From Paragordius varius (Eukaryota > Animalia > Nematomorpha), in contig OZ176050.1 in the NCBI GenBank assembly GCA_964247055.1, positions 14,198,001 through 14,262,000 on the forward strand: DNA of 64,000 bases, in the 5' to 3' direction. The translations under genes were made by a program, and so were the position numbers. Under the pieces are notes generated by a model that did not search any database, was not told the origin of the DNA, and saw nothing but the letters and a program-made list of their open reading frames with translations. The first letter of the stretch is position 1, and the number at the start of each line of letters is the position of its first letter. This document shows, piece by piece, positions 15,051 to 39,814 of the stretch.

Positions 15051-16990
15051 GATTGCAGAGCTTGCGATGTGTGTCGACACTGTCCGCAAATATAACTGTG
15101 TTATCCGTGTAATAAACGGATGTGAGCAAGTTTCCTCCTACGTTGATGCCATAAGTTTCTGGAATGTTTCTTATTTACATTCAAGATAGGCGTTAAAAAG
15201 AATTGGGGAAAAAACGCATCCTTGGGGTAAGCCGTCTTGCACCTTACATGGGTCAGTTATACCGTGAGGTGTAGGTATTACAGCCGTGGAATTTAAATAA
15301 ATTGAGAATATTACGTTGATTAGATGGGTTGATACTCCAAGTTGTTTTAGGGAAGTTCGTAATTTATTGTGTTGGATGGAATCAAATGCTTTGGAAAAAT
15401 TGACAAAGCACATGTGCAGTTATTTGTTAATTACAATATGTTTCTCTAGTATCCACCTGATATTGCCTTTCATAGCTCGGCATCCTCTTTCTCTAAAACC
15501 AGCCTGAATCGTGGATATCTCGGGGTCAAGAATGGTATTTAGTCAAACATGTATTATTTTTAGGAAAACACCTGGTTAAAGAGCGCTATGGTGCGATTGT
15601 CGCAGAGTTCTCGATTATCTTTTTTACAATATGAATCATAACTGATTTACACCAATCATCAAAAAATGTTTCCATATCAAATATATTTTCTAATAATTTT
15701 TTGAATATATCGATTTTAATATATTTTATTAAGCGCTGTATCTGTGTCCCTCTGATTTCCGATACTAGAGTATTTTATAGCATATTTAACTTCTTCTTTC
15801 ATTATAGATGGGTATTTCTCTTGAGTAGGTTCGATGATTATCTGAGGATTATCTACGTAAGGTTTACTTATGTGAGCCAAAGTTTGTGGTTTTGTGTTTT
15901 TCCGTGGATTGAGTTGTTGTCGTTTCTTACAGGTCCCTTGTAGAAAGATTCTTGCGTGGATTATTCTTTGTATGGGCAAAAAAGATTTCGGTTATTTTTG
16001 GCATCTGTTTCTATCTTTTTGCACAGTTGGTCGTAGGTTTTTCTGCGATCTTAAGACTTTTTGCTGATAATTTTATTTTTTATTTAGTATGAGGCTGCAT
16101 AAATTTGTCGGCTGTATCTCTTCGAATTGTGTGTATCGCGTTTCAAAAGGAATTTAAATTGTGATAGTTTTCGGAATTTAGATCACACTCGAAACGATTT
16201 GATAAAGCGGTGCTAAACTTGTCGTCGATTGCGAAATTTAATCTTGTTCTGGTGAGTTTAGATATTTTGGGAAGTTGTAATTTAATGCAAAGGTAAGATC
16301 AATTATGGTCGCTATAGCAACCCGTTTCCGGCAGGCATTTAACATTTTGAAATGAACATATATATTAAACATACCTAATATGAAGTCGATTTGGTTACGA
16401 TATCTCTAACACGGAAAACGCCATGCGTATAAACGTCATTTAGGTTGTTTAAAAAAATGTTTGAGACGAAGAAACCATGGTTAGCACAGAATTCGTCTAT
16501 TTCTTCCGTTTTTTATGCCCAAGCTCATGCCACCCAGGATAGGAAGTGTTTTGTCTTCTCCTATGATGGAATTAAAGTCTCCTAAGATAAATATGATATC
16601 TTTTGATATTTCAAGTCGCCAAGTCGAGATCACTGTAAAATTTTTCACAGACGTCATCGCTGAAAGTGGAGGTAGTGGCGTAAATTTGGAAGAATGGGTT
16701 GAGGGTTTGTTTGTATGCGGATTGCATTCATACGTTCATTAATTGGATTAATGTCAGATAAATTAGCAAGCTTTTTATTCATTATTATACCGACACCGTT
16801 GTATTTTAACGAGTTATGGCTAGAGTAATACATCATGTGATTGTCAAATTCTAAAGTTTCGGTAGAGGGAATGTGTGATCCTGAAATCCCGAGTATGTCA
16901 ATTTTATGCTTGGTTTCGTTTACTGCTAAATCTAATTTATTATTGTAATGAACACCCCGTAGGTTCCACGTCTATACGGAGGCTAAGATT
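15051..16990 (-). pseudogene. Decayed RTE-type LINE: APE endonuclease plus reverse transcriptase
   Basis: Minus-strand motifs TWNLRG (near 16965), YSSHNSLKYNGVGIIMNKK...INERM (ORF 16654..16836), GDFNS, FSKAFDSIQH...PQGCVFSPILFNAYL (ORF 15171..15413) and degenerate YTDN for YADD near 15105. Many stops and frameshifts. The 5' boundary is approximate. Confidence 0.85.
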
Positions 16991-17357
16991 ACGCGATTCG
17001 AATATTTTATGTGCGTAGAATGCGATAATGCGATGAAAGTTGAGAATATGTAAGGAAAATAATATAAATATGTCTAGAATGTTCGGAAAAGGTATAAAAT
17101 CAATGTTTTTGGTAAAAGAGATAGATAAGAGTAGGGTAGGTATACTATACCTTTCCCTCTTGATTAAAAATTGTTATTAAAATTTATATAAATGAGAGAG
17201 GTCATGGTTAACAACCTATTTCGCCATAAAACTTCGTGTATTTTCAACTTCGCTGGATCTTAGGTTTTCTGTGTTTTAATTTCAATAAAGCGGATATCAT
17301 TTATATGACCTATTAAGAGCATTAAATGGGAGAAATCATATCATGTTAAAAATGCTT

Positions 17358-17803
17358 ATCTATATATTTATAAAAATAGAAAGTGGTGGCTTTGTGATCT
17401 GTTTCTGGAAAACCGGTAGACCCATTCAATCCAAACATCGAAAAAATAAAATCATTAATGAATGCCCGACAATAGCTTGGCCCTTTTTTTAAATAGGCCC
17501 CCAGTTCGGGCCCACCCCGTGTGAAAAACAAGTTTTTTTTGAAACACAATTCCACAAAAATCGTGTCTTTGAGAGGAGAACGTGTTGGACCATTCGATTT
17601 CAAATAGGATTTTTGTTTACTTATTTTTGATTGCACCGAACATAGTCGATTCGTTTTTTTTTAATTTAGGCCCTCTTTTTACCCGCTCCCCCCGTAATAT
17701 GCCATTTTTTTCAAAAAAAACAAAATCTACAAATCTATTTTCCCCCAAGTAAACAACATAAGGATTTCCTAGGGCTGCGTAGCGGCACGAGATTTACGCT
17801 AGT
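17358..17803 (-). mobile_element. Helitron-like family, internally deleted copy with both ends
   Basis: Reverse complement of the family 3' end at 17358 (ATCTATATATTTATAAAAATAG) and of the 5' end at 17803 (GCACGAGATTTACGCTAGT). Confidence 0.7.
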
Positions 17804-21289: not shown

Positions 21290-23210
21290 CTCTAGAGTGA
21301 TTTCGATCAGTAAGTTTTGATAATTTTAATAGTAATTAAAATTTACGTTCCGATGTATTAGCGTATATTTCCAAAAAATCTAAGAAATATATTGTACAAA
21401 ATTCGCTTAAATACCATAATTATTTTCAGTATTTTTCAATTAATCTTTAAAAAACTTTCATATTATAAAAAAAAATTATTAAAATTTTAAACATTAATTT
21501 AATCAATTTAGATTTAATATAAATAAATCTTCTTAGAGCACAGACTAGATAAGTCACAATACTATTATAATTTATGAGTTGTATTAAAAAAATCATTCAT
21601 AAATTTATCCCCAAATTTTCCGTCAACACACAGACAATCGAACCCATTCATGATAGAATAATTTAATCATTTACAAAAAATTGAATAATGTCCAAAAAGG
21701 CTGAATAATACACATTAATGGATTAATTTCATTGATATTTTAGGTTATTTTAGATATGACCCTAAGTTTAAATACCTGAAAAATGAGTGTATCTTTTGGA
21801 AATTTAATGTTTAATATCTCATAATATTTATTTAACGGGCGCATTTTCATTAACGTATAAAATATCTTTATAACGGATTAACAAATAAAGACGATTATTT
21901 GTAAAGTTAATAAATACAAAGAGTTCTCCAAAATAAATAAATAATATGACGTTATCTTATTTATTTGCTATTACGTTTCGTTTGAATTACGCCATTTAAA
22001 GCTATCCAAATTCGATAAGGGGTATTTACAATGGTTTTTCTAGATAACATATTGTGTACCATATAAATTATATTTTATTTGTCATTTGTTAAAGCAGTAA
22101 GTAAATATACAAATTTTTAACTAATTGACACATTTCTTTAGAGAAATATCTTACTAAAATATACCAATTTATGACTTGTTGAATCCAGTAATACTTAAAC
22201 CGCGGCCCACAGGCCCCAAGTGATCGTAAAAGTACTTTTTCTTTTTCATGGCCCTGAGGTTCTTATTTAGAGTTTAAGTATAGCTATAAAAATTTTATCG
22301 ATATTATGCTTGAGACAAAGAAAATATTTTTTTTGGCTTTTCGAAAAAAAGTTATGAGTACCACTGGGTATATAACTATAATTAGTTAGCGGGAAATTCT
22401 TATCGAAAAATTTATTTTTAAAATAGTATGTTCATTCTCCTGTTTACATCATAAACATTTAAAGCATATCATATCATTATAGTTTTTACCTGAAATTTTC
22501 ATTTTATTTGCCTCATTATTAACAGTAAATACATGATAAAAATACTTTATTTCTATGAAACATTGTAAATAAAAAAACAACTTATTTTATAAACAAATAA
22601 ATAACAAAAAAATGTTTGAGATATTTTAGTAAAAATAATAAGATTTTTCATAATAAAAAATATATGTATTTTATACCTTTTGTTGATTACCTTTCGCCTT
22701 AGAACAAAAATAATGTGTAATTTTTCTGTAAACAAAGAAGTTACCTGTTTTAACGAGAAAAATAACATAGAAAAATATACCTTTTACATTTTATATATTT
22801 TAATGGCGTATATGAGGGAGAGAGAAACGCCATATTAGTATTTTATTTTACGTATTCTCGTGTACTGTAAAATTAAATAATTTTAGTTATCAAAATTTTC
22901 AAAATTTCTTATCCCTAAAAACGTCTTCAAATATACGATTATAATATATCATAACATATTACTCATACTCCTTCAGTTTATTTCGCATAAAACTATTTTT
23001 TTTAAATAATTCGCGTTAAAATGATTCAAAACATGGATAACTGTGAAAAAATAAAAATACAGATTGGGTTATACGAAGAATTACCAGGGTTCGTTTATCA
23101 CTGACGCCGAGCCCTATATAGTATCATCGACAATCATTAATTCTATCAAATACTACCTAAAAATAAACTAGTCATCTATATATTCTAAAAAAAACGGATC
23201 TATCTAAAAA

Positions 23211-26200
23211 ATGGATAAAACACAACATTTTGGTGGTGGAGGTATGCTCAGAGACCCTAGAAATACGAAATTAAACCCTTCGCCGGAAAAAAAGTTGAGC
23301 CCAGCATTTAAAGCAGCCACTGCATTTGCCCTAATAGCCATGGTTTGTATTGTCATTGCTTTTGCTAGCCCGAATTGGCTTGAACACGATAAACGATTCA
23401 CGCAATATCAACTCAAGAATCTGGGCTTGTGGGAAGTTTGTTTCAAGGGTTTCCGACACCCCTACCAAACCCTAGATAAAGTAACTTTACTTTAAATTCC
23501 AATTATTTTACATACAGGAAAATTGAAATCATACGGACAAAAGGTACAATTTTTTTTCCAAAAGTCAATGAAAATTTTTACTTCTTGATTTTTTATATAT
23601 AACTCATTGTTTGAAATAGTAAAGAGTGTTATTGTCATAGAGATATTACTAACAATCAATTTTATATATTACAATAATAATTAAATAGCTTATATAAGTG
23701 ACATTAAGGTTTGAAAAAGTATGGTTGTCTTTTAAAAAAAATATTTGTCTTTAAATTTTAACATTTTGTCCGTATAATTTTAATTTTTACTGTACTTTCT
23801 TAAAATTAGTTTTTACCAGAGATTTAGCTTAAATATACGATTTAATATATAAAAAAATTATTATTCATAGTTAATTTATTGTTATTAAATATGATTTTTA
23901 GCATGGATCAAAATTATAAAAACAAAAATTTTATAATTTATATATTTAAAAATTTAAAACGAAAATATTTTTTTTTCATTGCTCACCTGTTGCCAGGTCG
24001 GTTCAATGGTCACAAAAGAAATCTATAATCTCTTTTTCTATATATAATTTTAAACCATTAATACAGAGGCGTACCGAGGTGGGGGCAAGGGGTTGCATCA
24101 TGCCCCGGGCGCCGTTATTTAGGGGCGCCTAAATGATTTTTAAAATTAAAATTTAATTATGCAAAAATAATAAGAACTTTCAAATGAGATTTTTCAGCAA
24201 TAAATCCCTATAATATATACTCTATTATTCACCTAATTAGTGCCATTGAATAAATTTAGTATCATATAAATATATATATTTGATAGATTTAAAATTTACA
24301 TGACTGTGCTGTCTTATCTAAGGTCCTTAGGTTACAACGTTTGTATTTTTTTTACTGATTTGTTTTATGGCTTTTTAAAAAAAAAAGGGGGGGGGGGCGC
24401 CATAAAAGTTTTATGCCCCGGGCGCCGCAAATACTTGGTACGCCACTGCATTAATATACTAAATGACAAATATTTTTATACATTTAGTAAAAATCGATTT
24501 TTCAATATTTATTACATGTATAATTTTATTATTAAAGGTATACAGTGGATGTTGGTGGGTATTTTCACGCTACTTTGACGATTTATTGGATTACATTGAA
24601 AAAGGTAACTATACAATTATATAAACCATTTACTCCTCAAATTCACATTTGAACGATTCAAATTTATTCAAAAATAAATTATGTGCTTTTTAAGCTCAAA
24701 AATTACCTGTATTTTTTGATATTTATAAAAAATGAAATTAAAAATTAAAATAATACTGAAAAAATAATAAACTATGCCCATTAATAAATTTATATAAATA
24801 ATGAGTTATATTAGCGAAAAAGACATAATTTATTTTTAGATTGAATTTGAATTGATGAAGGGTGATTTGAATTTAAGGGTGTTAGAATAAAAATGATATA
24901 TTCAAAAAATGCTTAATTTTTTTTAATTTTTTAGAGTATATTAAAAATCCCTTAGGGTTTTATCCCCAAAACATTACACCTTTATTTAATGTTTATTTAC
25001 ATTGTGCATGACTCATTCCTGTATATCATGTAAAATTTTATTGCCTTCAATACATTAACCGTTAGTTATTTAAAAATATTCTTTACACTATAATTTTTTG
25101 CGAATATATTTTTATATACGATCGATACCGCTGATATTTTGGTTAATGTAAGGACTTCTCAATATTTTTGTAAGCTTTCCAACAATAGGGGAGATTTACC
25201 GTTCTCTTCTTTCTAATAATACTTAGAAAAATAAATTAGTTTGAGCATAAATGAACCCTTAAACAATTCCATTTTAATAATTCATTACCTCTTCACTTTT
25301 TTGTCCTAATTTACCATTCATAACACAGAGCTCAATTTAGTAAATAAACTACAATTTTAAAAGTTAATTATCAAACATTGTTCTCATTATTAGATTAAAA
25401 TGCTTATATTTTTTCAAAATTTGTGAGTTCCAGAATCTAAAATTGGGGGAGCTCCAAAACACGATTAAAACAAACAGATGATATTAACACCAAAATATAT
25501 AAATTTTTGCTAATAAAATGTAGCCTGAAAGCTTTTTTAAGTTAATTCTTTACATTTTCTAATTCTAAAATTTATTTATTTGCCTGTTGCATTAGCGATT
25601 TAAAAAAAATATAGAAAAAAATGGCGGCGAAAAAGTTTGAGAAATTTTTTTTACAATTTCCCATTAAAAAATTGTGTAATGCACCGCAAAGACTAAAGAA
25701 AGCATATGTTTAATTTTGGCTACCCTAAATACTTTTTAAGATATTCATATTCTTCTAAATTGATCTTAAACTACCTCGCAAAAAAGGTAATGTAGTGTTA
25801 AATCAAATTTATACTGTTATAACTATTTTCGTTATGCTAAATAAAAAAATCATACATGAATTACTTGAACGATATTATATATTTTCTTTTTCCTTAGGAT
25901 TTTTTATCACGGTTCAAGTTTTCATGAGCTTGGGATTCCTCCTGTTTTTCATAGCAATGGCTATGCTTATTCCGGTTTTCTTGCGACTTTTTGACATTGA
26001 TACCGAGATTAGCGTAACGTTCGTTATGGCCGGGACTATGCTCTTATCATGTAAGTCTTAATTTATTTAAAAATATATAGTAACTGAAATTATACGGGAA
26101 ATAAGTAAAATAATAAAGACAAATATTTGAAAATACAACCATTTTTTTAATTTAACACATTGTTTAAAATGGTAAAGTGTGTGAAATAGAGATATATATT

Positions 26201-26995
26201 ACAAACACAATAAATTCTATATTTTATAATTGCTATAGAGCCTAATAGGAAATATTAAGGTTTAAAAAGTATGGGGTTGTCTTTTAGATAACAATAATTG
26301 CCTCTTTATATTTTTACGTTTTGTCCGTATAATTTGAACTGTATCCCTTTCTTTTATGAAAGTTTTATTTTTACGGTAAAAGTTAAAAATATACAGACAC
26401 AACGAAAAACATAAACACAATTATATTTTATAGACCATTGATTTTCCTCTATAATTTATGTAATCTATAGCTAGAAGGTATTTAATAAAAGCCTTTACAA
26501 TATATCAAGAGTTATTTGGCCTTTTCAAAAGGTATCTGAAGCTATAAAACCTTGTTTCCCTAATCAATTATTTATTAAAAATGCCAAATTAAAGCATATC
26601 AATTTCGCACCCTTTTTATTACATGATGCGTATAAACACTATACTAAAAAGGTGTTTCTCAATTTATTGGATTGGTTGTTTTTGCTGTGCACGGGGATCG
26701 CAGGGACTGGTTGGTAGATTTGCAATGGGCAAATTATGGTTGGTCCTTTTACACCGCTTGGTTAGGTGTGGTGGGCGTCGGGTTAGCCGGTTATTTTTAC
26801 ATGAGGGAAGCGGTAGAAGTTAGCGGACGTCGAACTAAAGAACTTTTTCAGAAAGATAATTTGGGTGCTGCATTCACCATAGAAACAGGGGACAAAGGGC
26901 CTTTAGGCCCTTCGGGAAAAATTCCGTACATGTCTAATGCCTATAACAGCTCTTATGGACCACACATTAGCAAAAAATCTCACCATAAAACATAG
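23211..26995 (+). CDS. Invertebrate claudin-like tetraspan protein (kune-kune/pickel/sinuous type), isoform A, 277 aa
   Basis: Exons 23211-23480, 24538-24604, 25898-26050 and 26652-26995 have consistent phases 0, 1, 1. Motifs FASPNW...NLGLWEVCF...GCWWVF (W-GLW-C-C claudin signature), four hydrophobic segments and DRRDW...GWSF. The orthologue cannot be named from sequence alone. Confidence 0.88.
23515..23792. mobile_element. TA-flanked MITE of the CAGTAAAAATTGAAAT family in claudin intron 1
   Basis: Inverted arms of about 90 bp with TA flanks. Further copies lie near 26078-26341, 28430-28700 and 48075-48353. Confidence 0.75.
24064..24448. mobile_element. hAT-type MITE (385 bp) in claudin intron 1
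   Basis: TIRs CAGAGGCGTACC and GGTACGCCACTG; exact 8-bp TSD CATTAATA at 24056-24063 and 24449-24456; GC-rich GCCCCGGGCGCC subtermini. Confidence 0.9.
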
Positions 26996-27415
26996 AAATT
27001 TGATGATACCAATCAAAGATCCATAAAATATTTAATGCTTAAAAAGAAAATTTTTCTATATATATACTTCTATTAAATGTGGTATAAATCACATTAATAT
27101 CCTTCAAAACACAAACGCGCATGATCTATCACCAGTCCCTGAAATTCCGTTTACAATACTCTGCCAAAATCTAAGCATTTATTTTTGTTACCTATTTATT
27201 GTGATAAAATTTTGTCTGTGATTCAAGCAAATTCATGACAATCCGCGTTTTGGAAAATTTCATATATAATCTTAATGCAGATAATTTCCCTTTAACTTAC
27301 ATTATGTAAACACAATACTATATTTAACCACTTAATTAAACTTCTTTCCTTAAAATATACATATATATACATATATATATCCGATGAGGTTAAGAAACGT
27401 TTTTTTTCACACTAG

Positions 27416-27819
27416 TTTTTTTCCATTTCATGGGACTGGTGATATTTGCCTTCAAAGCTAAAGATTCGGATTGGATGCCGCATTGGAAATGGAACTATTT
27501 ATCGTGGTCTTTTGCCGCGGGGATTATCGGTGCCTTGTTTCAATTAGCTTGTGCCATTCTGTATTTGGTGGATTGCTCGGGTCGCAAACGTTATGTCTTA
27601 GGGCATGGCGGTAGAAGTAAGCGCAATGAAAATATTCAATTCAATTTCGGGGCTGGTCGACAACACAATATCACCAATAATAATATGCCACCTAGACCAC
27701 TTGCGACCCATATATCTTCCTCCTTAACTCATCATCAACACGTAAATCAAAATGTGCAAAATCCTGGAAATAATATGCCTTACCATAATACAAATAATTA
27801 CCAAGGCCGTGGAGTTTAA
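27416..27819 (+). CDS. Second, paralogous terminal exon of the same claudin gene (isoform B, 297 aa)
   Basis: Acceptor TTTTTTTCACACTAG ends at 27415. A phase-1 join to exon 3 gives LS-FFFHFMGLVIFAFKAKDSDWMPHWKWNYLSWSFAAGIIG, which aligns gap-free with exon 4A LS-CVSQFIGLVVFAVHGDRRDWLVDLQWANYGWSFYTAWLG. No separate upstream exons were seen between 26995 and 27416. Confidence 0.78.
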
Positions 27820-29376
27820 TTTATATATGTGGAAATTGCCCCTATTATTACTTTTTTTATTGAGATTTGATAATTGTCTCTATTGCTTTTTAATATATTG
27901 AATACCGACTGCCCGATATACATATGATATTTAATACTTTAAAGAATATACCTTTATTATATCTTGGCAGATTTTTTAATGAAAATCTTGTAATTTTTTA
28001 TATTCTCCCCCTCCAACTCAAGCATTTTATTACACAATACGAACCAAACGAATCGAGAATAACTTTATATATATAAATATTCTGACCTAAAATTTGGGCA
28101 TTTATATAATTTTAAACACAGTCCCTAACCATTTTTCATAATATATTTTGATAATTTTATTTTCAATTTTGATACTACAAAAGGCATTCATTATTTTTAT
28201 TTTTTAAATGTTTTGTTCAGTCATAATTTTTTTGAAATGGTTTACAGCATACTTCTCCAACACATTCCAAACAACATTCTCGATGTAAATATTTTTATTT
28301 AAATAAATATTTATATAAATTTAATTAGAATTTTATAAGTATACATTTTTTAACCTATTTGACAATAAATTATCACATTTTTTTATAACTTTGTAGTTTC
28401 TAGCTAAAGTACAGTGGTATACCTCCCTTACAAAATATTAAAATTATACGGACAAATGTAAAAATATAAAGAAAAAAGTTTTCATTAAAAAACAACCATA
28501 CCATTTCAAACTTGAAATTATTTTAAATATAACTCATTGTTTTTAACTCAAGTGTAAAATTGAATATATATTGGTAACACAGTCAATTACATGTTTTGAG
28601 ATTGTAGATAAACTAAGGATTGAAAAAGTATGATTGTCTTTTAGAAATAATTTTGTCTTTATATTTTTATATTTTGTCCGTATAATTTCAATTTTTACTG
28701 TATTGAATTGATCGTTGGAAAAAATAAACATAATAAACAAAAAAAGCCGGTTAAAAATAATTAAATAAATACATACATACAAAATTTATGGTTATATCCA
28801 AACTTGAAGGAGCCACTTGAAGTGTTAAAGGACTAATTTAAAATGTTCAAGGAGCAACTCTTGAAGTGCAAATGGTATATATGTGGTTCGTTTTAGAATT
28901 ATATATTAAACAATTTTAAATTATAGGAGCCAGTTAATATAAATAATTCAATTTAAATATATGCGTTATTTGCCGAAACAGTAGAAGGGGACTTGAACTA
29001 TCTATTCAACACCGCCTATTTCCTAATTCCAAATGGCTTAAAAATTGTATAATGAAAAACTAAACCATGAAAATTTTCGACGTCTAATTATTTTTCGACG
29101 CTTAAATAATGTTTCAAACTGGCATAGGTTAAATTGTATGGATTATTCTGATTGTGAAAGCAAATTGAACAATCTAATCTTTTTCGGTTTCATTTTTTCG
29201 TTTATTCTTTCTGAGTCAAGCTACTTTTTAGAATTTTAAGTGCCTATTAAACAAAATTTGTATTCTTAAAAAAAGCATTAATTTGTGATATTTATTTTGG
29301 TTTGACCTAATGGGATGACATTTCCATGTTAATAATAAAAAAAAAATTAAAAAAAATTTATTTTGTTGCTTATGGC

Positions 29377-29455: not shown

Positions 29456-30737
29456 TTATATAACAAAATTTTTTTTTATACAAATATTTTTTTTTTCCGT
29501 TTAAATTTTTTATCATTAAATATTAAAATCTATATAAGTTTTAAATTAAAATTTTTTATTTTTAAATTAATATTTATTTTTTTCGAATTTATATCATACT
29601 AGCGTGAATCTCGTGCTGCTACGCAGCCCGAGGAAGTCCTTCGGACTTCTGGGGGAGGGGGGGGTCGAAGTTTGGATTTGAATGGGTCTCTCGGTTTTCC
29701 GGAAACAGATCCCAAAGTTACTTGAGAAATCAGTTTTTAGCGGGTAGCTCCTTATCCAGCAGCTATCATCAAAGAAACGCCTGACTAAAATTTTTGCCTT
29801 TTAACAGGGAATACGTGGAATCCATATTGAATTTTTACGGTCTCATAAGGGCGAAAAATAGATTTAAAAAATTATTTTTGTGGACTTTGTTTTTTGAAAA
29901 AAATGGCATTTTACGGGGGGAGAGGGTAAAAAGAGGGCCTAAATAAAAAAAGTGACTCGACTATGTTCGGCGCAATCGAAAATAAGTAAACAAAAATCAT
30001 ATTTGAAATAGAATGGACCAACACGTTCTCCATAAAATTGTCTCAAAGACACGATTTTTGTGGACTTGTGTTTTCAAAAAAAAACCGTTTTTCACACGGG
30101 GTGGGCCCGAACTGGGGGCCTGTTTCAAAAAAAGGGCGAAGCTATTGTCGGGCTATTCATTAATGATTATATTTTTTCGAAGTTTGGATTTGAATGGGTC
30201 TACCGGTTTTCCTGTACCAGATGACAAAGTTACATGAGGAATCAGTTTTTAGCGGGTAGCTCCTTACCCAGCAGCTATCATCAAAGAAACGCCTGACTAA
30301 ATTTTTTGCCTTTTAACAGGCAATACGAAAAAACCTTCTCGAATTTTTACAGTCTCATACCTTGGGCAAAAAAATACAATCAAAAAATTATTTTTGTGGA
30401 CTTTGTTTTTTTTTGAAAAAAATAGCATTTTACGGGGGTAGCGGGTAAAAAGAGGGCCAAAATCAAAACAGTGAGTCGACTATGTTCGGTGCAATCGAAA
30501 ATAAGTAAACAAAAATTATATTTGAAATTGAATGGTCCAACACGTTCTCCAGAAAATTGACTTAACCCATTTTTCACACGGGGTAGGCCCAAACTGGGGA
30601 CCTAATTCCAAAAAAGGGCGAAGCTATTGTCGGGGCATTCATTAATGATTAAAATTTTTCGATGTTTGGATTTGAATGGGTTCACCGGTTTTCCGGTAAC
30701 AGATCACAAAGTTACATGAGAAATCAGTTTTTAGCGG

Positions 30738-31041: not shown

Positions 31042-34000
31042 ATGGATAAAATTTCAATCGAAGGATACGATGACAAATATGATTTTGCCACTTATATCAG
31101 ATATGTCAAAAGAGTTATGATCTCCAAAAATGTTGATATTAATGATGATAATATCAAAGTACTGTTTTTGGCTGGAGCTGGTTTTAAAACAATTAATAAG
31201 ATCGAAACAATGATTTTTCCGGAATCAATTGATGATGCTCCTTGGTCCAAAATTCATGACATTGGTCTTAAACTTTTCTCACCTGCCAAGTCTGTCTTCG
31301 CTGCAAGGTTGAGTTTGCTCGTTTGCGGAGAAATGATGGAGAAACATTCACGGAATTTTTGCAAAGAGTCAAGAGTGTGGCGGAAAAGGCTAAATTTCAA
31401 ACAGATGTGGAGGAGAGAATTAGAGACAGTTTGGCTGGATTAAACTTGCAATCATTGGAAGTGGATCTTTATTCACGATTCCCCGATGCGAAGTGTGATG
31501 GGAAGGCGGTGTCATTAACCACCATTGTCGACATGGCCTTGGCTCAGGAACTTGCAAGGGCCGATATTGCCTCCCATGTGTCGTCAAGCAGTATCCTTAA
31601 AATTCAAAAGAATCGGTCGAATGATAATAATAATAATAATCATAAGAATAATAATATGGAATATAAAAAAAATGATGATGGCAATAATAATAAATGGAAG
31701 CGGAGATGTAGCAAATGTGGTAAATCGCATATACCAAAACAATGTCCCGCGTTCGGAAAAATATGCCACAATTGTAATAAAAAAAATCATTTTCAGGCAA
31801 TGTGTCGCCATAAGAAACGATATAGTGATAATATAAACGCTAATTATAATAAATGGGGCACACAAGCGAACATTTGCGCTATGATTAATGGACAAGCTGT
31901 CGTATGGTTTTTGATACTGGAGCTGCTGCTTCTTTGATTAATAAAAATGTTTGGAAGACGGTGGGAGCACCGTTACTAAAAAGTGCTCCCAGATTAACTT
32001 CCTACGGAAACAACCCAATCAAACTCTTGGGAAAAACAGTTGTCAATGTAACAATGGGAAATATTACGAAGAAATTAGAATGTTTTGTGACGGAAGAAGA
32101 GCTATCTCCTATATTTGGGCTGCCGTGGATCATTGGTTGTGGCATGACCTTACCGGATAACGTGAGTGTTAATCAAATAACATCGAATAATAATAATGGT
32201 CATGACAATGTATTCAAGCGATTTCCAAAACTCTCTAACGGGAAATTGGGTTGTTACAACGGTGATCCTGTCAAATTGTATGTCCGATCAGATGCAATAC
32301 CAAAAGTCTGCGCTGCACGGCGAATACCATTGGCACTACAGAGTAAAGTAGAGATGGAAATACAGAGACTGATAGACCTGGGAATAGTGAGTCCCGTAGA
32401 TCCAACACAACACCATGTGGAATGGGCGACTCCTACGGTTAACGTCGTAAAAACTAATAGGGAAATTAGGGTGTGCGCTGATTTCCGGGTAACTATCAAT
32501 TCTTTGATGGAGAACATATCTCAGATTATCCCAACATTTGACACGATCGCATCTAAATGTGCGGGATCCACATGGTTCTCGTCCATTGATTTAAAGGACG
32601 CATACCTTCAAATTCCGGTGGATGTGGAAAGTAAAAAATATTTAGTTATTACTACCCCGATGGGATATTTCCAATTTAATCGCCTACCATTTGGATTGAA
32701 AGTTTCTCCCATGCTTTTCCAGAGAATAATGGATGAGGTACTCAAAGATTGCAGGGGCACAATGGCTTATCTCGACGATGTTTTGATTGTTGGTAAAACG
32801 AAAGAGGAACACGATAGAAATCTGAGCGAGACCTTAGCAAAGTTACAAAAATGCGGGTTTACACTAAGAAAAGATAAATTAAAACTGTATCAGAAGAATA
32901 TAAAATTTTTGGGGTTTGAGTTATCAAAACAGGGAATCCGCCCTGTACAAGATAAGCTCGACGCCATTGCTAAATGTGCAACACTCACGAATAAAACTGA
33001 GTTAAGATCATTTTTGGGATTGCTCAATTTTTTTGAACGTTTTATTCCTGGTTTACATGTCAAAGTTAGTAATCTACATGCACTAACAGGATCCAAAAAG
33101 GAATGGAGATGGTCACAAGAACATCAAAATGAATTCAAGCAAGCAAAAAACTTAATATCAAGAGAATCTTTACTTGCCACTTATAACATAAATAATAAAA
33201 CAATAATACAAGTGGATGCGTCTACAAAAGGCTTTGGAGCTGTACTTCTTTAAATGGAAAATAAGAGAATGGTACCAATTGCATTCTCATCAAGAAAATG
33301 CCAGAATGCAGAGAAAAATTATTCTGTGATTGAATTGGAAACCAAGGCTTTGTTATTTGGTTTAGAAAAATTCCATTATAATATTTATGGACAGAAATGT
33401 GAGATTTGGTCAGATCATAAGCCGTTGGTTCATTTATTCGGAAACAATCGGAAGTTAAGTGATATTAAAAACTGTAAATTGTTAAGATGGATCTACAAGG
33501 CCGCCGCGTATGATTTTGATATGAAATATATTGCGGGATCGACAAACATGGCCGATGTGTTTTCAAGACTTCCCGAAAAGAGTCAGACATCCGTAGACAA
33601 TGATGATGAATATGTGGCCGAAAAAATCCGACAAATCGCATTCGTGGATTTAGATTTAAATAAAACGCAAATAAAAAAAGATTGTTTGGAGGATAACTGT
33701 TAAAACGACTACGTATGGCACTTAAAAATAATGATTGGTCAACACCGGAATTATCCGCATTCGAACCCGTTAGAAATGATCTCAAACAAGCCGATGGTTT
33801 CGTATATGTTGGTGATCGGTTGGTTATCCCAACAGCTGCACGAAGACGAATTTTGGCTTGGTTTCATGTTGGACATCCGGGTATCGTTGCTATGAAAAAC
33901 ACAGCCAGGTCGGTGGTGTTTTGGCCCGGAATGGATAAGGATATTGAAAAGTTAGTACACGACTGTCAGTGTTGTCAGGGGAACAGGGCGAACGTTGCTG

Positions 34001-34799
34001 AGAATCCGGTATATAAATGGAACTTCAATGTGGGAATATTGGAAAGACTCCATGTGGACATCGCGGGTCCCATGTGTGGTAAATATTGGTTGGTTTTAAT
34101 TGACGCGTTCTCAAGATGGGTGGAGGTGGAGATACTTAGCAGTATTACATCTGATGTGATTTTGAAACAATTGGAGAAATGGTTTTCCTCTTATGGTTTT
34201 CCAAGAATGCTAGTATCTGATAATGCTACTTATTTCAAATCGTTCAATTTTCGGGATAAGATGACAAACTGGAACATTAAGCATGTGACGTCGGCTCCCT
34301 ACACCCAAGGACAAATGGTTTGGTAGAAAGAGTAATTTATACGTTGAAGTCGAGATTCCATTCCACGATGATGCCTAGCGTGAAGAGTCAGGAGGCTTTA
34401 AATAATGTTTTATTGGCCTATCGTAATTCATGGAATAACGAGATTAAGACGACCCCCGCATCGTTGTTTTTGAAGAGAAACATCAACACACCGTTGAATT
34501 GGTTGCAAGATAAAGAAACGCCTAAAGAAAGTACACCACCGAGACCCTTAAGAGAATTCACACCGGATCAGTCAATATTTATAAAGAACGAGACATCAAG
34601 AGGATGGCGACCGGGTACGGTGGAAGTAAGGACGGGGCCGTTATCCTATGAAGTAAAGGATGAAGATGGAAAAGAGATGCGAAAACATGCCGATCAACTG
34701 AGATCGGATGTTGAGCAGAGGGAGGCCCCCAGACGGTATCCAGACCGAGTCCGAAAACCTCCGAAGCGTTTTGTAGAGGAGGAAGAGAATGATATGTAG
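31042..34799 (+). pseudogene. gag-pol of the Gypsy element, broken into 6 ORF pieces
   Basis: Zinc knuckles CSKCGKSH...C and CHNCNKKNH...C, protease FDTGA, RT YLDD, RNase H DASTKG...ELE...DHKPL, integrase GHPG...CQCC and HVDIAGP...SDNA. Frameshifts near 31325, 31905 and 34320; stops at 33253 and 33703. Confidence 0.93.
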
Positions 34800-35058: not shown

Positions 35059-35620
35059 AGCGGGTAGCTCCTTACCCAGCAGCTATCATCATAAGAAATG
35101 CCTGACTGAAATTTTTGCCTTTTAACAGGGAATACGTGGAATCCATATTGAATTTTTACGGTCTCATACCTAGGGCGAAAAATAGATTTAAAAAATTATT
35201 TTTGAGGACTTTGTTTTTAGAAAAAAATGGCATTTTACGGGGGTAGGGGGTAAAAAGAGGGCCTAAATCAAAAAAGTGACTCGACTATGTTCGGCGCAAT
35301 CGAAAATAAGTATACAAAAATCATATTTGAAATAGAATGGACCAACACGTTCTCCAGAAAATTGTCTCAAAGACACGATTTTTGTGGACTTGTGTTTTCA
35401 AAAAAACCCGTTTTTCACACAGGGTGGCCCCGAACTAAGGGCCTATTTCAAAAAAAGGGCGAAGCTATTGTCGGGGCATTCATTAATGATTATATTTTTT
35501 CGAAGTTTGGATTTGAATGGGTCTACCGGTTTTCCTGTACCAGATCACAAAGCCAGCATTTTCCATTTTTATAAATATATAGATGATTATACACTTTCTT
35601 CCTAATACTACTGTCATCAT

Positions 35621-38331: not shown

Positions 38332-39814
38332 CAGGGGTTTCCAACACGCGAGCCGCTGCCTTTCAATAGGTAGCCCTCAAGAAACATTTAATAAACAAAA
38401 TTTCAATTATTCTAAATGATATCGATTTTCTTAAACTTAATGTTTTTCCGAATTTTGGTAAGAACCAGCAATCATTGTTAAAATAAATAATTGTTTTTCA
38501 GTTTTATGATTGAAATCTATATATTTATAAAAATGGAAAATGCTGGCTTTGTGATCTGGTACAGGAAAACCGGTAGACCCAATCAAATCCAAATATCGAA
38601 AAAATATAATCATTAATAAATGTCCCGACAATAGCTTCGCCCTTTTTTTGAAATAGGCCCCCAGTTCAGGCCCACCCCGTATGAAAAACGGGTTTTTTTT
38701 GAAAACAGAAGTCCACAAAATCGTGTTTTTGAGACAATTTTCCGGAGAACGTGTTGGACCATTCAATTTCAAATATGATTTTTGTTTACTTATTTTCGAT
38801 TGCGCCGAACATAGTCGAGCCACTTTTTTGATTTAGGCCCTCTTTTTACCCGCTCCCCCCGTAAAATGCCATTTTTTTCAAAAAACAAAGTCCACAAAAA
38901 TAATTTTTTAAATCGATTTTTCGTCCTAGGTATGAGACCTTAAAAATTCAATAAAGATTCCACGTATTCCCTGTTAAAAGGCAAAAATTTTAGTCCACCG
39001 TTTATTTGATGATAGCTGCTGGGTAAGGAGCTACCCGCTAAAAACTGATTTTTCATATAACTTTGTGAACTGTTTCCGGAAAACCGGTGATCCCAATCAA
39101 ATCCAAATATCGAAAAAATATAATCATTAATGAATGCCCCGACAATAGCTTCGCCCTTTTTTGGAATTAGGTCCCCAGTTCGGGCCCACCCCGTGTGAAA
39201 AATGGGTTAAGTCAATTTTTTGGAGAACGTGTTGGACCATTCAATTTCAAATATGAATTTTGTTTACTTATTTTTGATCGCGCTGAACATAGTCGAGTCA
39301 CTTTTTTGATTTAGGCCCTCTTTTTACCCGCTCCCCCCGTAAAATGCCATTTTTTTCAAAAAAAACAAAGTCCACAAAAATATTTTTTTGATTGTATTTT
39401 TTTGTCCACGGTATGAGACTGTAAAAATTCGAGAAAGATTTTTCGTATTGCCTGTTAAAAGGCAAAAATTTTAGTCAAGCGTTTCTTTGATGATAGCTGC
39501 TGAGTAAGGAGTATCTATCATATGTATAGCATGTTAAAAGATATATGGATATTAAAACATTATTTATGGTAATCTATATATTTATAAAAATGGAAAATGA
39601 TGGCTTTGTGATCTACAGGAAAAACGGTACACCCATTCAAATCCAAACTTCGAACCCCCCCCCCCCCCCCCCCAGAAGTCCGAAGGACTTCCTCGGGCTG
39701 TGTAGCAGCACGAGATTCACGCTAGTGTAATAATACAATTTTTGTTCATGCCCATATGTTTTACGAATGCGGCCCGTCTGATTTTTTGTCTAAATGCGGC
39801 ATTAGACACCCCTG
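38332..39814. mobile_element. Probable hAT-type non-autonomous element hosting Helitron-like copies
   Basis: Ends CAGGGGTTTCCAAC and TTAGACACCCCTG are imperfect TIRs. The flanking 8-mers do not match, so no TSD is supported. Confidence 0.45.
38515..39726 (-). mobile_element. Helitron-like copies in inverted orientation: two-unit body 38515-39515 and a minimal 155-bp copy 39572-39726
   Basis: Family 3' end at 38515 and again at 39572; family 5' end at 39726 (GCACGAGATTCACGCTAGT). Confidence 0.75.

Follow-up and report, generated by a model that had tools for sequence, protein, structure and literature searches.

Tandem homologous last exons in a claudin-superfamily gene of the nematomorph Paragordius varius

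Claudin-10a and claudin-10b differ by alternative first exons and form anion and cation channels, respectively (PMC6862131). In Drosophila, pipe and the 3' variable regions of PGRP-LC have tandemly duplicated, mutually exclusive terminal exons (PMC9013439). The claudin-like gene considered here is located in a 64-kb stretch of the genome of Paragordius varius (Nematomorpha; contig OZ176050.1), the whole of which is referred to as the window, and carries two homologous last exons, named 4A and 4B. Sequence comparisons suggest that this one gene very probably makes two proteins by using 4A and 4B as alternatives.

A preliminary description of the sequence had proposed that the gene exchanges its second extracellular loop (loop 2), fourth transmembrane segment (TM4) and tail by choice of last exon. 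This proposal was supported by the exon order in a second nematomorph, Gordionus, by RefSeq isoforms, by the orthology of each exon separately and by coding constraint. The exchanged module was found to be larger than first described, as it also includes the C-terminal half of TM3.

Organisation of the gene and its two last exons

The window is very AT-rich (GC content 23–38%). The gene is on the + strand and, in window coordinates, exons at 23211–23480, 24538–24604 and 25898–26050 are followed by an end located at either 26652–26995 (4A) or 27416–27819 (4B). Exon 1 (23211–23480) opens with the ATG and encodes the N-terminal tail and TM1, after which extracellular loop 1 begins (..SPNWLE..LGLWEVC..), and it has a GT donor at 23481 in phase 0. 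This exon alone matched the Pfam family Claudin_2 with 39.8 bits (cut-off 29.1) over profile positions 1–48. Exon 2 (24538–24604) encodes the remainder of loop 1, VYSGCWWVFSRYFDDLLDYIEK, together with the first base of a Gly codon, and its GT donor at 24605 is in phase 1. TM2, a short inner loop and the N-terminal half of TM3 are encoded by exon 3 (25898–26050), which ends at a GTAAGT donor at 26051. The exit from exon 3 is in phase 1, with one base carried over, and the donor is common to 4A and 4B. The phase and donor were thus as previously reported, and both downstream exons were likewise confirmed to accept phase 1 and to carry a stop codon each.

The proximal exon, 4A (26652–26995), encodes the C-terminal half of TM3, loop 2 with the sequence HGDRRDWLVDLQWANYGWSF, TM4 and a 61-residue tail ending ..SHHKT, and closes with a TAG stop. 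Its acceptor (...ctaaaaag/GT, with the slash at the exon boundary) is weak and A-rich, and the split codon is completed as Cys. The distal exon, 4B (27416–27819), encodes the C-terminal half of TM3, loop 2 with the sequence KAKDSDWMPHWKWNYLSWSF, TM4 and an 81-residue N/H/Q-rich tail ending ..QGRGV, and closes with a TAA stop. The 4B acceptor (...cacactag/TT) has a T-rich tract, and here the split codon is completed as Phe. Both exons matched Claudin_2, 4A with 25.3 bits at profile positions 135–190 and 4B with 23.8 bits, the two matches spanning positions 135–192, which is the last quarter of the profile. The full reading frame closes with either end, giving 834 nt (277 amino acids, aa) with 4A and 894 nt (297 aa) with 4B. 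No internal GTRAG donor that could join 4A to 4B was found within 4A.

A BLASTP comparison of the two translations found 18 of 58 residues identical (31%; E-value 1e-8), indicating that the exons are paralogous, and bore out the strong divergence that had been noted. No gap is needed to align the first 50 residues of the translations, a stretch that takes in D-W...W...W-S-F and the last membrane helix, in agreement with the gap-free alignment from the splice site through the W..F motif that had been reported, and the loop sequences and tail ends quoted at that time (..SHHKT and ..QGRGV) were exact. Given the rate of stop codons in the local introns (0.086 per codon), the probability that frames of 114 and 134 codons stay open by chance is ~4e-5 and ~6e-6, respectively. 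The arrangement is that of tandem terminal exons, with two adjacent homologous exons of equal acceptor phase that each have their own stop. No third copy of the last exon was detected in the 64 kb using tblastn.

The 420 bases between the two exons (26996–27415, + strand) are presumed to include the 3' untranslated region and poly(A) region of a 4A mRNA, and ATTAAA occurs in them at 27072 and 27335. The same bases are the final part of the 1365-base intron that is removed when 4B is used. If 4B were instead part of a downstream tandem paralogue with its own promoter and 5' exons, the locus would include two separate genes. Tandem gene duplication is a common mode in relatives, as the bee Osmia bicornis and the tardigrade Ramazzottius varieornatus have arrays of three to four tandem complete Claudin_2 genes, with one last exon each. 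However, a tblastn search found no claudin-like coding sequence in the spacer, the 420 bases have no similarity to exons 1–3, and there is no other copy in the 64 kb. Splicing of 4B to the exons of a separate gene had been named at the outset as an outcome that would count against a single gene, and no upstream exons for such a gene are present in the window. Furthermore, 4B starts in phase 1 in the middle of TM3 and cannot begin a protein with a claudin-type fold, and the two gene models from Gordionus, the RefSeq model and that of the genome authors, both join exon 3 to an exon of the 4B type. Two separate genes are hence a most improbable explanation for the locus.

Conservation of both last exons in Gordionus and the constraint on them

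The aligned 4A and 4B sequences were used as a profile in an exhaustive search, which found 82 proteins. The best match, P0001, was isoform X2 (232 aa) of LOC135924557 from Gordionus sp. m RMFG-2023 (Nematomorpha). This protein (XP_065315696.1) is identical to CAK9297336.1 in the RNA-seq-guided BRAKER annotation of the genome authors. A word search with P0001 retrieved P0105, isoform X1 (271 aa) of the same gene, whereas a word search with 4A alone gave no match. The sequences of X1 and X2 do not differ as far as the last residue that exon 3 encodes, and diverge thereafter. X2 continues into a 4B-type module (..DSDWMPHWKWNYYSWSF..) that ends ..QGSGV, and X1 into a 4A-type module (..HGDDRDWMIDAQWLVYSWAF.., ..RRNKELAQHVNL..) that ends ..PYV. 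The exon order in the Gordionus locus is as in the window, with exon 3 followed after ~690 bases by the 4A-type exon and, after a further ~600 bases, by the 4B-type exon. The isoforms are the product of automatic RefSeq annotation, a pipeline in which extra isoforms would normally need transcript support. RNA-seq data exist for Gordionus.

The shared exons of the two species are 79–88% identical. In tblastn searches, exon 1 was 79% identical to P0001/P0105 (E-value 1e-34) and exon 2 was 87.5% identical to Gordionus residues 77–100, and 44 of 50 residues are identical in exon 3. Each of the last exons was found to pair with its own counterpart. The end of Gordionus X1 matched 4A with 85.5 bits (E-value 2e-21) and 4B with 34 bits, while the end of X2 matched 4B with 104 bits (E-value 3e-28) and 4A with 37.7 bits. 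In a tree of 95 modules, the 4A sequences of the two species were grouped with support of 96, and the 4B sequences with support of 99. Both last exons are therefore conserved as coding sequence in the second species, and the reciprocal searches and the tree indicate that the duplication of the last exon is older than the split between P. varius and Gordionus. Like the window gene, the Gordionus gene has a phase-1 junction in mid-TM3, after which the 4A-type and 4B-type exons lie in this order with similar spacing, and the acceptor of its 4A-type exon (...aaaaaaag) is A-rich as in the window. It differs in the positions of the 5' introns, as the N-terminal part is split elsewhere and the intron between exons 1 and 2 of the window gene is missing. 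The tails also differ, with 4A ending ..PYV in Gordionus and ..HKT in the window, and with a 4B tail of 29 residues in Gordionus compared with 81 in the window, where there is an N/H/Q-rich insert. The isoforms are not described in the Gordionus genome paper, in which the word 'isoform' was not found. The values of 27% GC and 64% repeats reported for Gordionus montsenyensis agree with the nematomorph-like character of the window.

At the DNA level, alignment between the window and Gordionus is confined to the coding exons, and neither the introns nor the 26996–27415 spacer could be aligned. A blastn match with 79% identity covered 27414–27512 in 4B. Synonymous sites were found to be saturated, with the proportion of synonymous differences (pS) at 0.67–0.96, and the comparison was therefore made using pS together with the proportion of non-synonymous differences (pN) and identity by codon position, rather than dN/dS proper. 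For exon 3, pN was 0.077 against a pS of 0.84, with identities of 0.82, 0.98 and 0.46 at the first, second and third codon positions. The core of 4B had a pN of 0.139 against a saturated pS, with identities of 0.85, 0.83 and 0.42, and that of 4A a pN of 0.369 against a pS of 0.665, with identities of 0.52, 0.69 and 0.50. As pN is below pS for both last exons and is only 0.139 for 4B, 4B is not a decayed copy, an outcome that the preliminary description had named as refuting its proposal and had intended to judge by dN/dS. The near-invariant loop-2 residues of the family (W-M-P...N...W-S-F) are kept in 4B. By sequence, 4B is the ancestral-type, conserved and family-typical module, and 4A is a derived, faster-evolving one. 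A DNA run from a near-identical organism (organism B, run X5) differed from the window at three places in 4B (R>G, R>S and TAA>TAG), and no difference was listed for 4A; these numbers are too small to test polymorphism.

Several observations weigh against the use of both exons, and some of them would fit an explanation in which 4A is a relic that is decaying or rarely used, 4B is in effect the only end made into protein, and Gordionus X1 reflects either noise in the annotation or a rare transcript without function. Exon 4A is much less constrained than 4B, its rate of change at non-synonymous sites being ~2.7 times that of 4B (pN 0.369 versus 0.139), and its first codon positions are as diverged as its third (0.52 and 0.50). 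It lacks the near-invariant loop-2 residues M, P and N, and its acceptor is the weak, A-rich one. The genome authors' own annotation of Gordionus contains only the 4B form. In P. varius, both junctions are supported by comparison; a search for sequencing runs that include the locus returned only DNA-type runs, and three small putative RNA runs with the same species label had zero depth across 23000–28500, which is uninformative either way. The ATTAAA to which the preliminary description had drawn attention is present at 27072 but has no weight as a signal, since AATAAA and ATTAAA occur at ~6 per kb on the + strand and the two copies in the 420-base spacer are at chance level. Lastly, a conserved RNA pairing that might explain the choice of exon was looked for in the window and in Gordionus, and was not found.

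Against a relic, an open frame of 113–120 codons and the phase-1 acceptor have been kept in two species despite saturated silent sites and introns, and such a frame would occur by chance with a probability of only ~4e-5. Second codon positions are still the best conserved in 4A (0.69), and the motifs D-W, Q-W, W-x-F and RR-x-KEL-x-Q-x-x-NL are common to both species. The tblastn match to 4A (E-value 2e-21) and a predicted structure of the Gordionus 4A isoform that is confident in the swapped part point the same way. As the frame, phase-1 acceptor and motifs are retained at a saturated distance, 4A does not behave as a neutral relic, and it is distinctly unlikely that the gene effectively makes only the 4B protein.

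Inverted repeats that bracket 4A were present in both species and were examined as candidates for competing RNA structures, but they are AT-rich and at chance level, and were rejected. A separate GC-rich, perfect 11-base complement was observed between 26701–26711, inside 4A, and 27131–27141, 136 bases past the 4A stop. The score of this pairing was reached by 1 of 100 shuffles, and nothing comparable was seen in Gordionus.

With one gene using both last exons, the following course of events is likely, and resembles an ordinary choice between alternative terminal exons. The last coding exon would have been duplicated in tandem before P. varius and Gordionus diverged, and both products would share the part encoded by exons 1–3, from the N-terminus and TM1 through loop 1 and TM2 to the middle of TM3. 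In one route, the donor at 26051 would join the weak 4A acceptor (26652) and the transcript would be cleaved at a proximal poly(A) site in the spacer, leading to the 277-aa protein. In the other, 4A would be skipped within the 1365-base intron and the donor would join 4B (27416), leading to the 297-aa protein. The products would differ in the second half of TM3, all of loop 2, TM4 and the cytoplasmic tail. Use of both junctions in P. varius, the choice of poly(A) site and any functional difference between the products are what we infer from these comparisons.

Family, predicted fold and origin of the second last exon

The full-length Gordionus orthologues matched Claudin_2 (PF13903) over positions 1–192, with 92.1 bits for the 4B form and 83.3 bits for the 4A form. 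AlphaFold2 models were made for these natural isoforms using a 25-sequence family alignment, and the mean predicted local distance difference test score (pLDDT) was 88.4 for X2 and 82.5 for X1, with values of 82–98 in the swapped region. The same topology was predicted for both isoforms, with four helices (18–39, 100–127, 133–165 and 181–~205), four strands in loop 1 (44–84) and one in loop 2 (177–179). Foldseek searches with the models retrieved GARLH4/LHFPL4, the transmembrane AMPA receptor regulatory proteins (TARPs) gamma-2, gamma-7 and gamma-8, and claudin-15 (E-values ~1e-7 to 2e-6, probability 1.00), with TM-scores by target of ~0.6–0.73. TARP gamma-2/-8, GARLH4 and claudin-15 share the four-helix bundle and extracellular beta-sheet, though at only 12–17% identity, and a sequence search against solved structures gave only spurious matches to G protein-coupled receptors. 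Based on the models, the product is a tetraspan protein of the claudin superfamily (Pfam Claudin_2), with the same predicted fold for both isoforms. The W of NWLE, G-L-W and two Cys residues that are invariant in loop 1 of the family are present. With C64 and C82 in P0001, the Cys-Cys spacing is 18 residues, compared with the shorter 8–10 of the PROSITE claudin pattern. The earlier naming of the gene as a claudin thus holds at the superfamily level, but the nearest solved folds are as much receptor auxiliary subunits as claudins. As these include non-junctional auxiliary subunits, a role of loop 2 in adhesion would be by analogy here.

The TM3/TM4 face, loop 2 and the tail mediate partner contacts in claudins and TARPs. 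By analogy, the 4A product probably has a different specificity for extracellular or in-membrane partners, and different cytoplasmic connections. A swap of PDZ-type tails had also been proposed, and this part is weak in the window. The 4A end (..HKT) is not hydrophobic and does not look like a PDZ ligand, and the 4B end (..GRGV) has Val at position 0 but Arg at –2. Binding to PDZ domains is plausible in Gordionus, where ..PYV (4A) and ..SGV (4B) look like PDZ ligands, and in arthropod relatives with ..T-x-I/V ends. In run X5, a C>A difference at 27808 changes the Arg at –2 of the 4B tail to Ser, giving the ..GSGV of Gordionus and a class-I PDZ-type end, and the A>G difference at 27819 retains the 4B stop.

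More distant Claudin_2 genes of arthropods and tardigrades, such as the bee P0027 cluster (named 'claudin' in RefSeq), Drosophila setifemur KAH8373024.1 and Ramazzottius RvY_13975, are 31–38% identical to the Gordionus orthologue. They share the G-L-W...C...C of loop 1 and G-D-x-R-D-W-M-P-x-W-x-x-N-x-x-S-W-S-F in loop 2. Unlike the nematomorph gene, their diversity comes from tandem whole genes, and their tails end in class-I PDZ-type T/S-x-I/V; one Drosophila species has a single intronless gene. A duplication confined to the last exon thus appears to be a nematomorph feature, as far as sampled.

In the Osmia bicornis (L002:5038-12720) and Ramazzottius (L004:1-12910) sequences, the Claudin_2 arrays are nested within a gene that encodes Pfam Indigoidine_A and PfkB domains, and are on the strand opposite to it. 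The presence of this nesting in two phyla suggests a very old microsynteny, which was not seen around the Gordionus gene. Among the other proteins retrieved, P0070 (Liolophura sinensis, 431 aa) consists of two complete claudin-like units joined head to tail, by fusion or read-through. The profile matched P0003 (336 aa) in five stretches, and this W/D/M-rich tandem-repeat protein is probably a false friend.

The tandem whole-gene arrays of relatives allow a different origin for 4A, namely that it is the captured last exon of a neighbouring paralogue that was once complete and has lost its 5' exons, as in a collapsed gene array. An unconstrained tree placed the 4A pair nearer to the group of the third bee gene than to 4B (Shimodaira–Hasegawa-like approximate likelihood ratio test, SH-aLRT, 87), and the third bee gene shares the RRDWL loop start with 4A. 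However, the module has just 58 alignable columns, and a single clade of all four nematomorph modules was not rejected and scored better (approximately unbiased test, p = 0.906). The common phase-1 boundary in mid-TM3 is the simplest result of an exon duplication, and would fit a capture too if the intron position is ancestral. Capture is unlikely as the origin of 4A.

A more far-reaching view of 4A can be held only tentatively, as somewhat doubtful. In this scenario, 4A would be a functionally re-specified half, so that one nematomorph gene gives rise to two proteins with different partners in place of a whole-gene array, and the module may stem from a captured paralogue exon. The parts replaced in 4A are the near-invariant loop-2 residues of the family (W-M-P...N), half of TM3 and TM4, surfaces through which TARP-type relatives dock onto the channel they partner and claudins make cis/trans contacts. 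If true, the claudin superfamily would gain its first example of a switch of partners through alternative terminal exons.

Repeated sequences occupy other parts of the window. Repeats of high copy number are present in the introns of the claudin-like gene, where contig depths in run X5 reached the thousands. A dispersed repeat family with the open reading frame motif ..FFTRGGPELGAY(F/L)KK..LNGSTGFP.. has at least four copies in the window, at 17346–17636 (– strand), 30013–30237 (+), 35287–35605 (+) and 38437–38823 (–). A run of long open reading frames resembling a long terminal repeat retrotransposon was found on the + strand at 31042–34799, with gag zinc-knuckle, protease/reverse-transcriptase and integrase-like content, and a separate reverse-transcriptase fragment on the – strand at 15171–15413, both recognised by eye from the translations.

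Comparison with known systems

A literature search retrieved no account of a claudin-superfamily gene that swaps its last exon, and to our knowledge none has been described. If both ends are used, the gene would represent a natural domain-swap experiment on the role of loop 2, TM4 and the tail in partner choice, and would suggest that splicing can take the place of a gene array in a parasite lineage with few genes. It also bears on annotation of the currently unannotated P. varius genome, in which both ends need modelling.

Tandem alternative terminal exons as a kind, first-exon swaps in claudins, and the automatic RefSeq models of both Gordionus isoforms are already known. The gene resembles pipe and PGRP-LC in having tandem homologous terminal exons, one of which would be included per transcript. 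It differs in that it belongs to another gene family and has just two copies, which are anciently diverged (31% identity), and in that PGRP-LC has competing RNA structures, whereas none that is convincing or conserved was seen here. With claudin-10a/10b, it shares the derivation of two proteins from one claudin-superfamily gene through a swapped module of transmembrane segment and extracellular loop. However, claudin-10 exchanges its first exon, with TM1 and loop 1, whereas in the window gene the exchanged exon is the last, with half of TM3, loop 2, TM4 and the tail. Diversity in the claudin superfamily usually arises by gene duplication, and the nematomorph gene instead keeps two anciently diverged versions of its second half as probable alternative terminal exons, conserved across nematomorph species.

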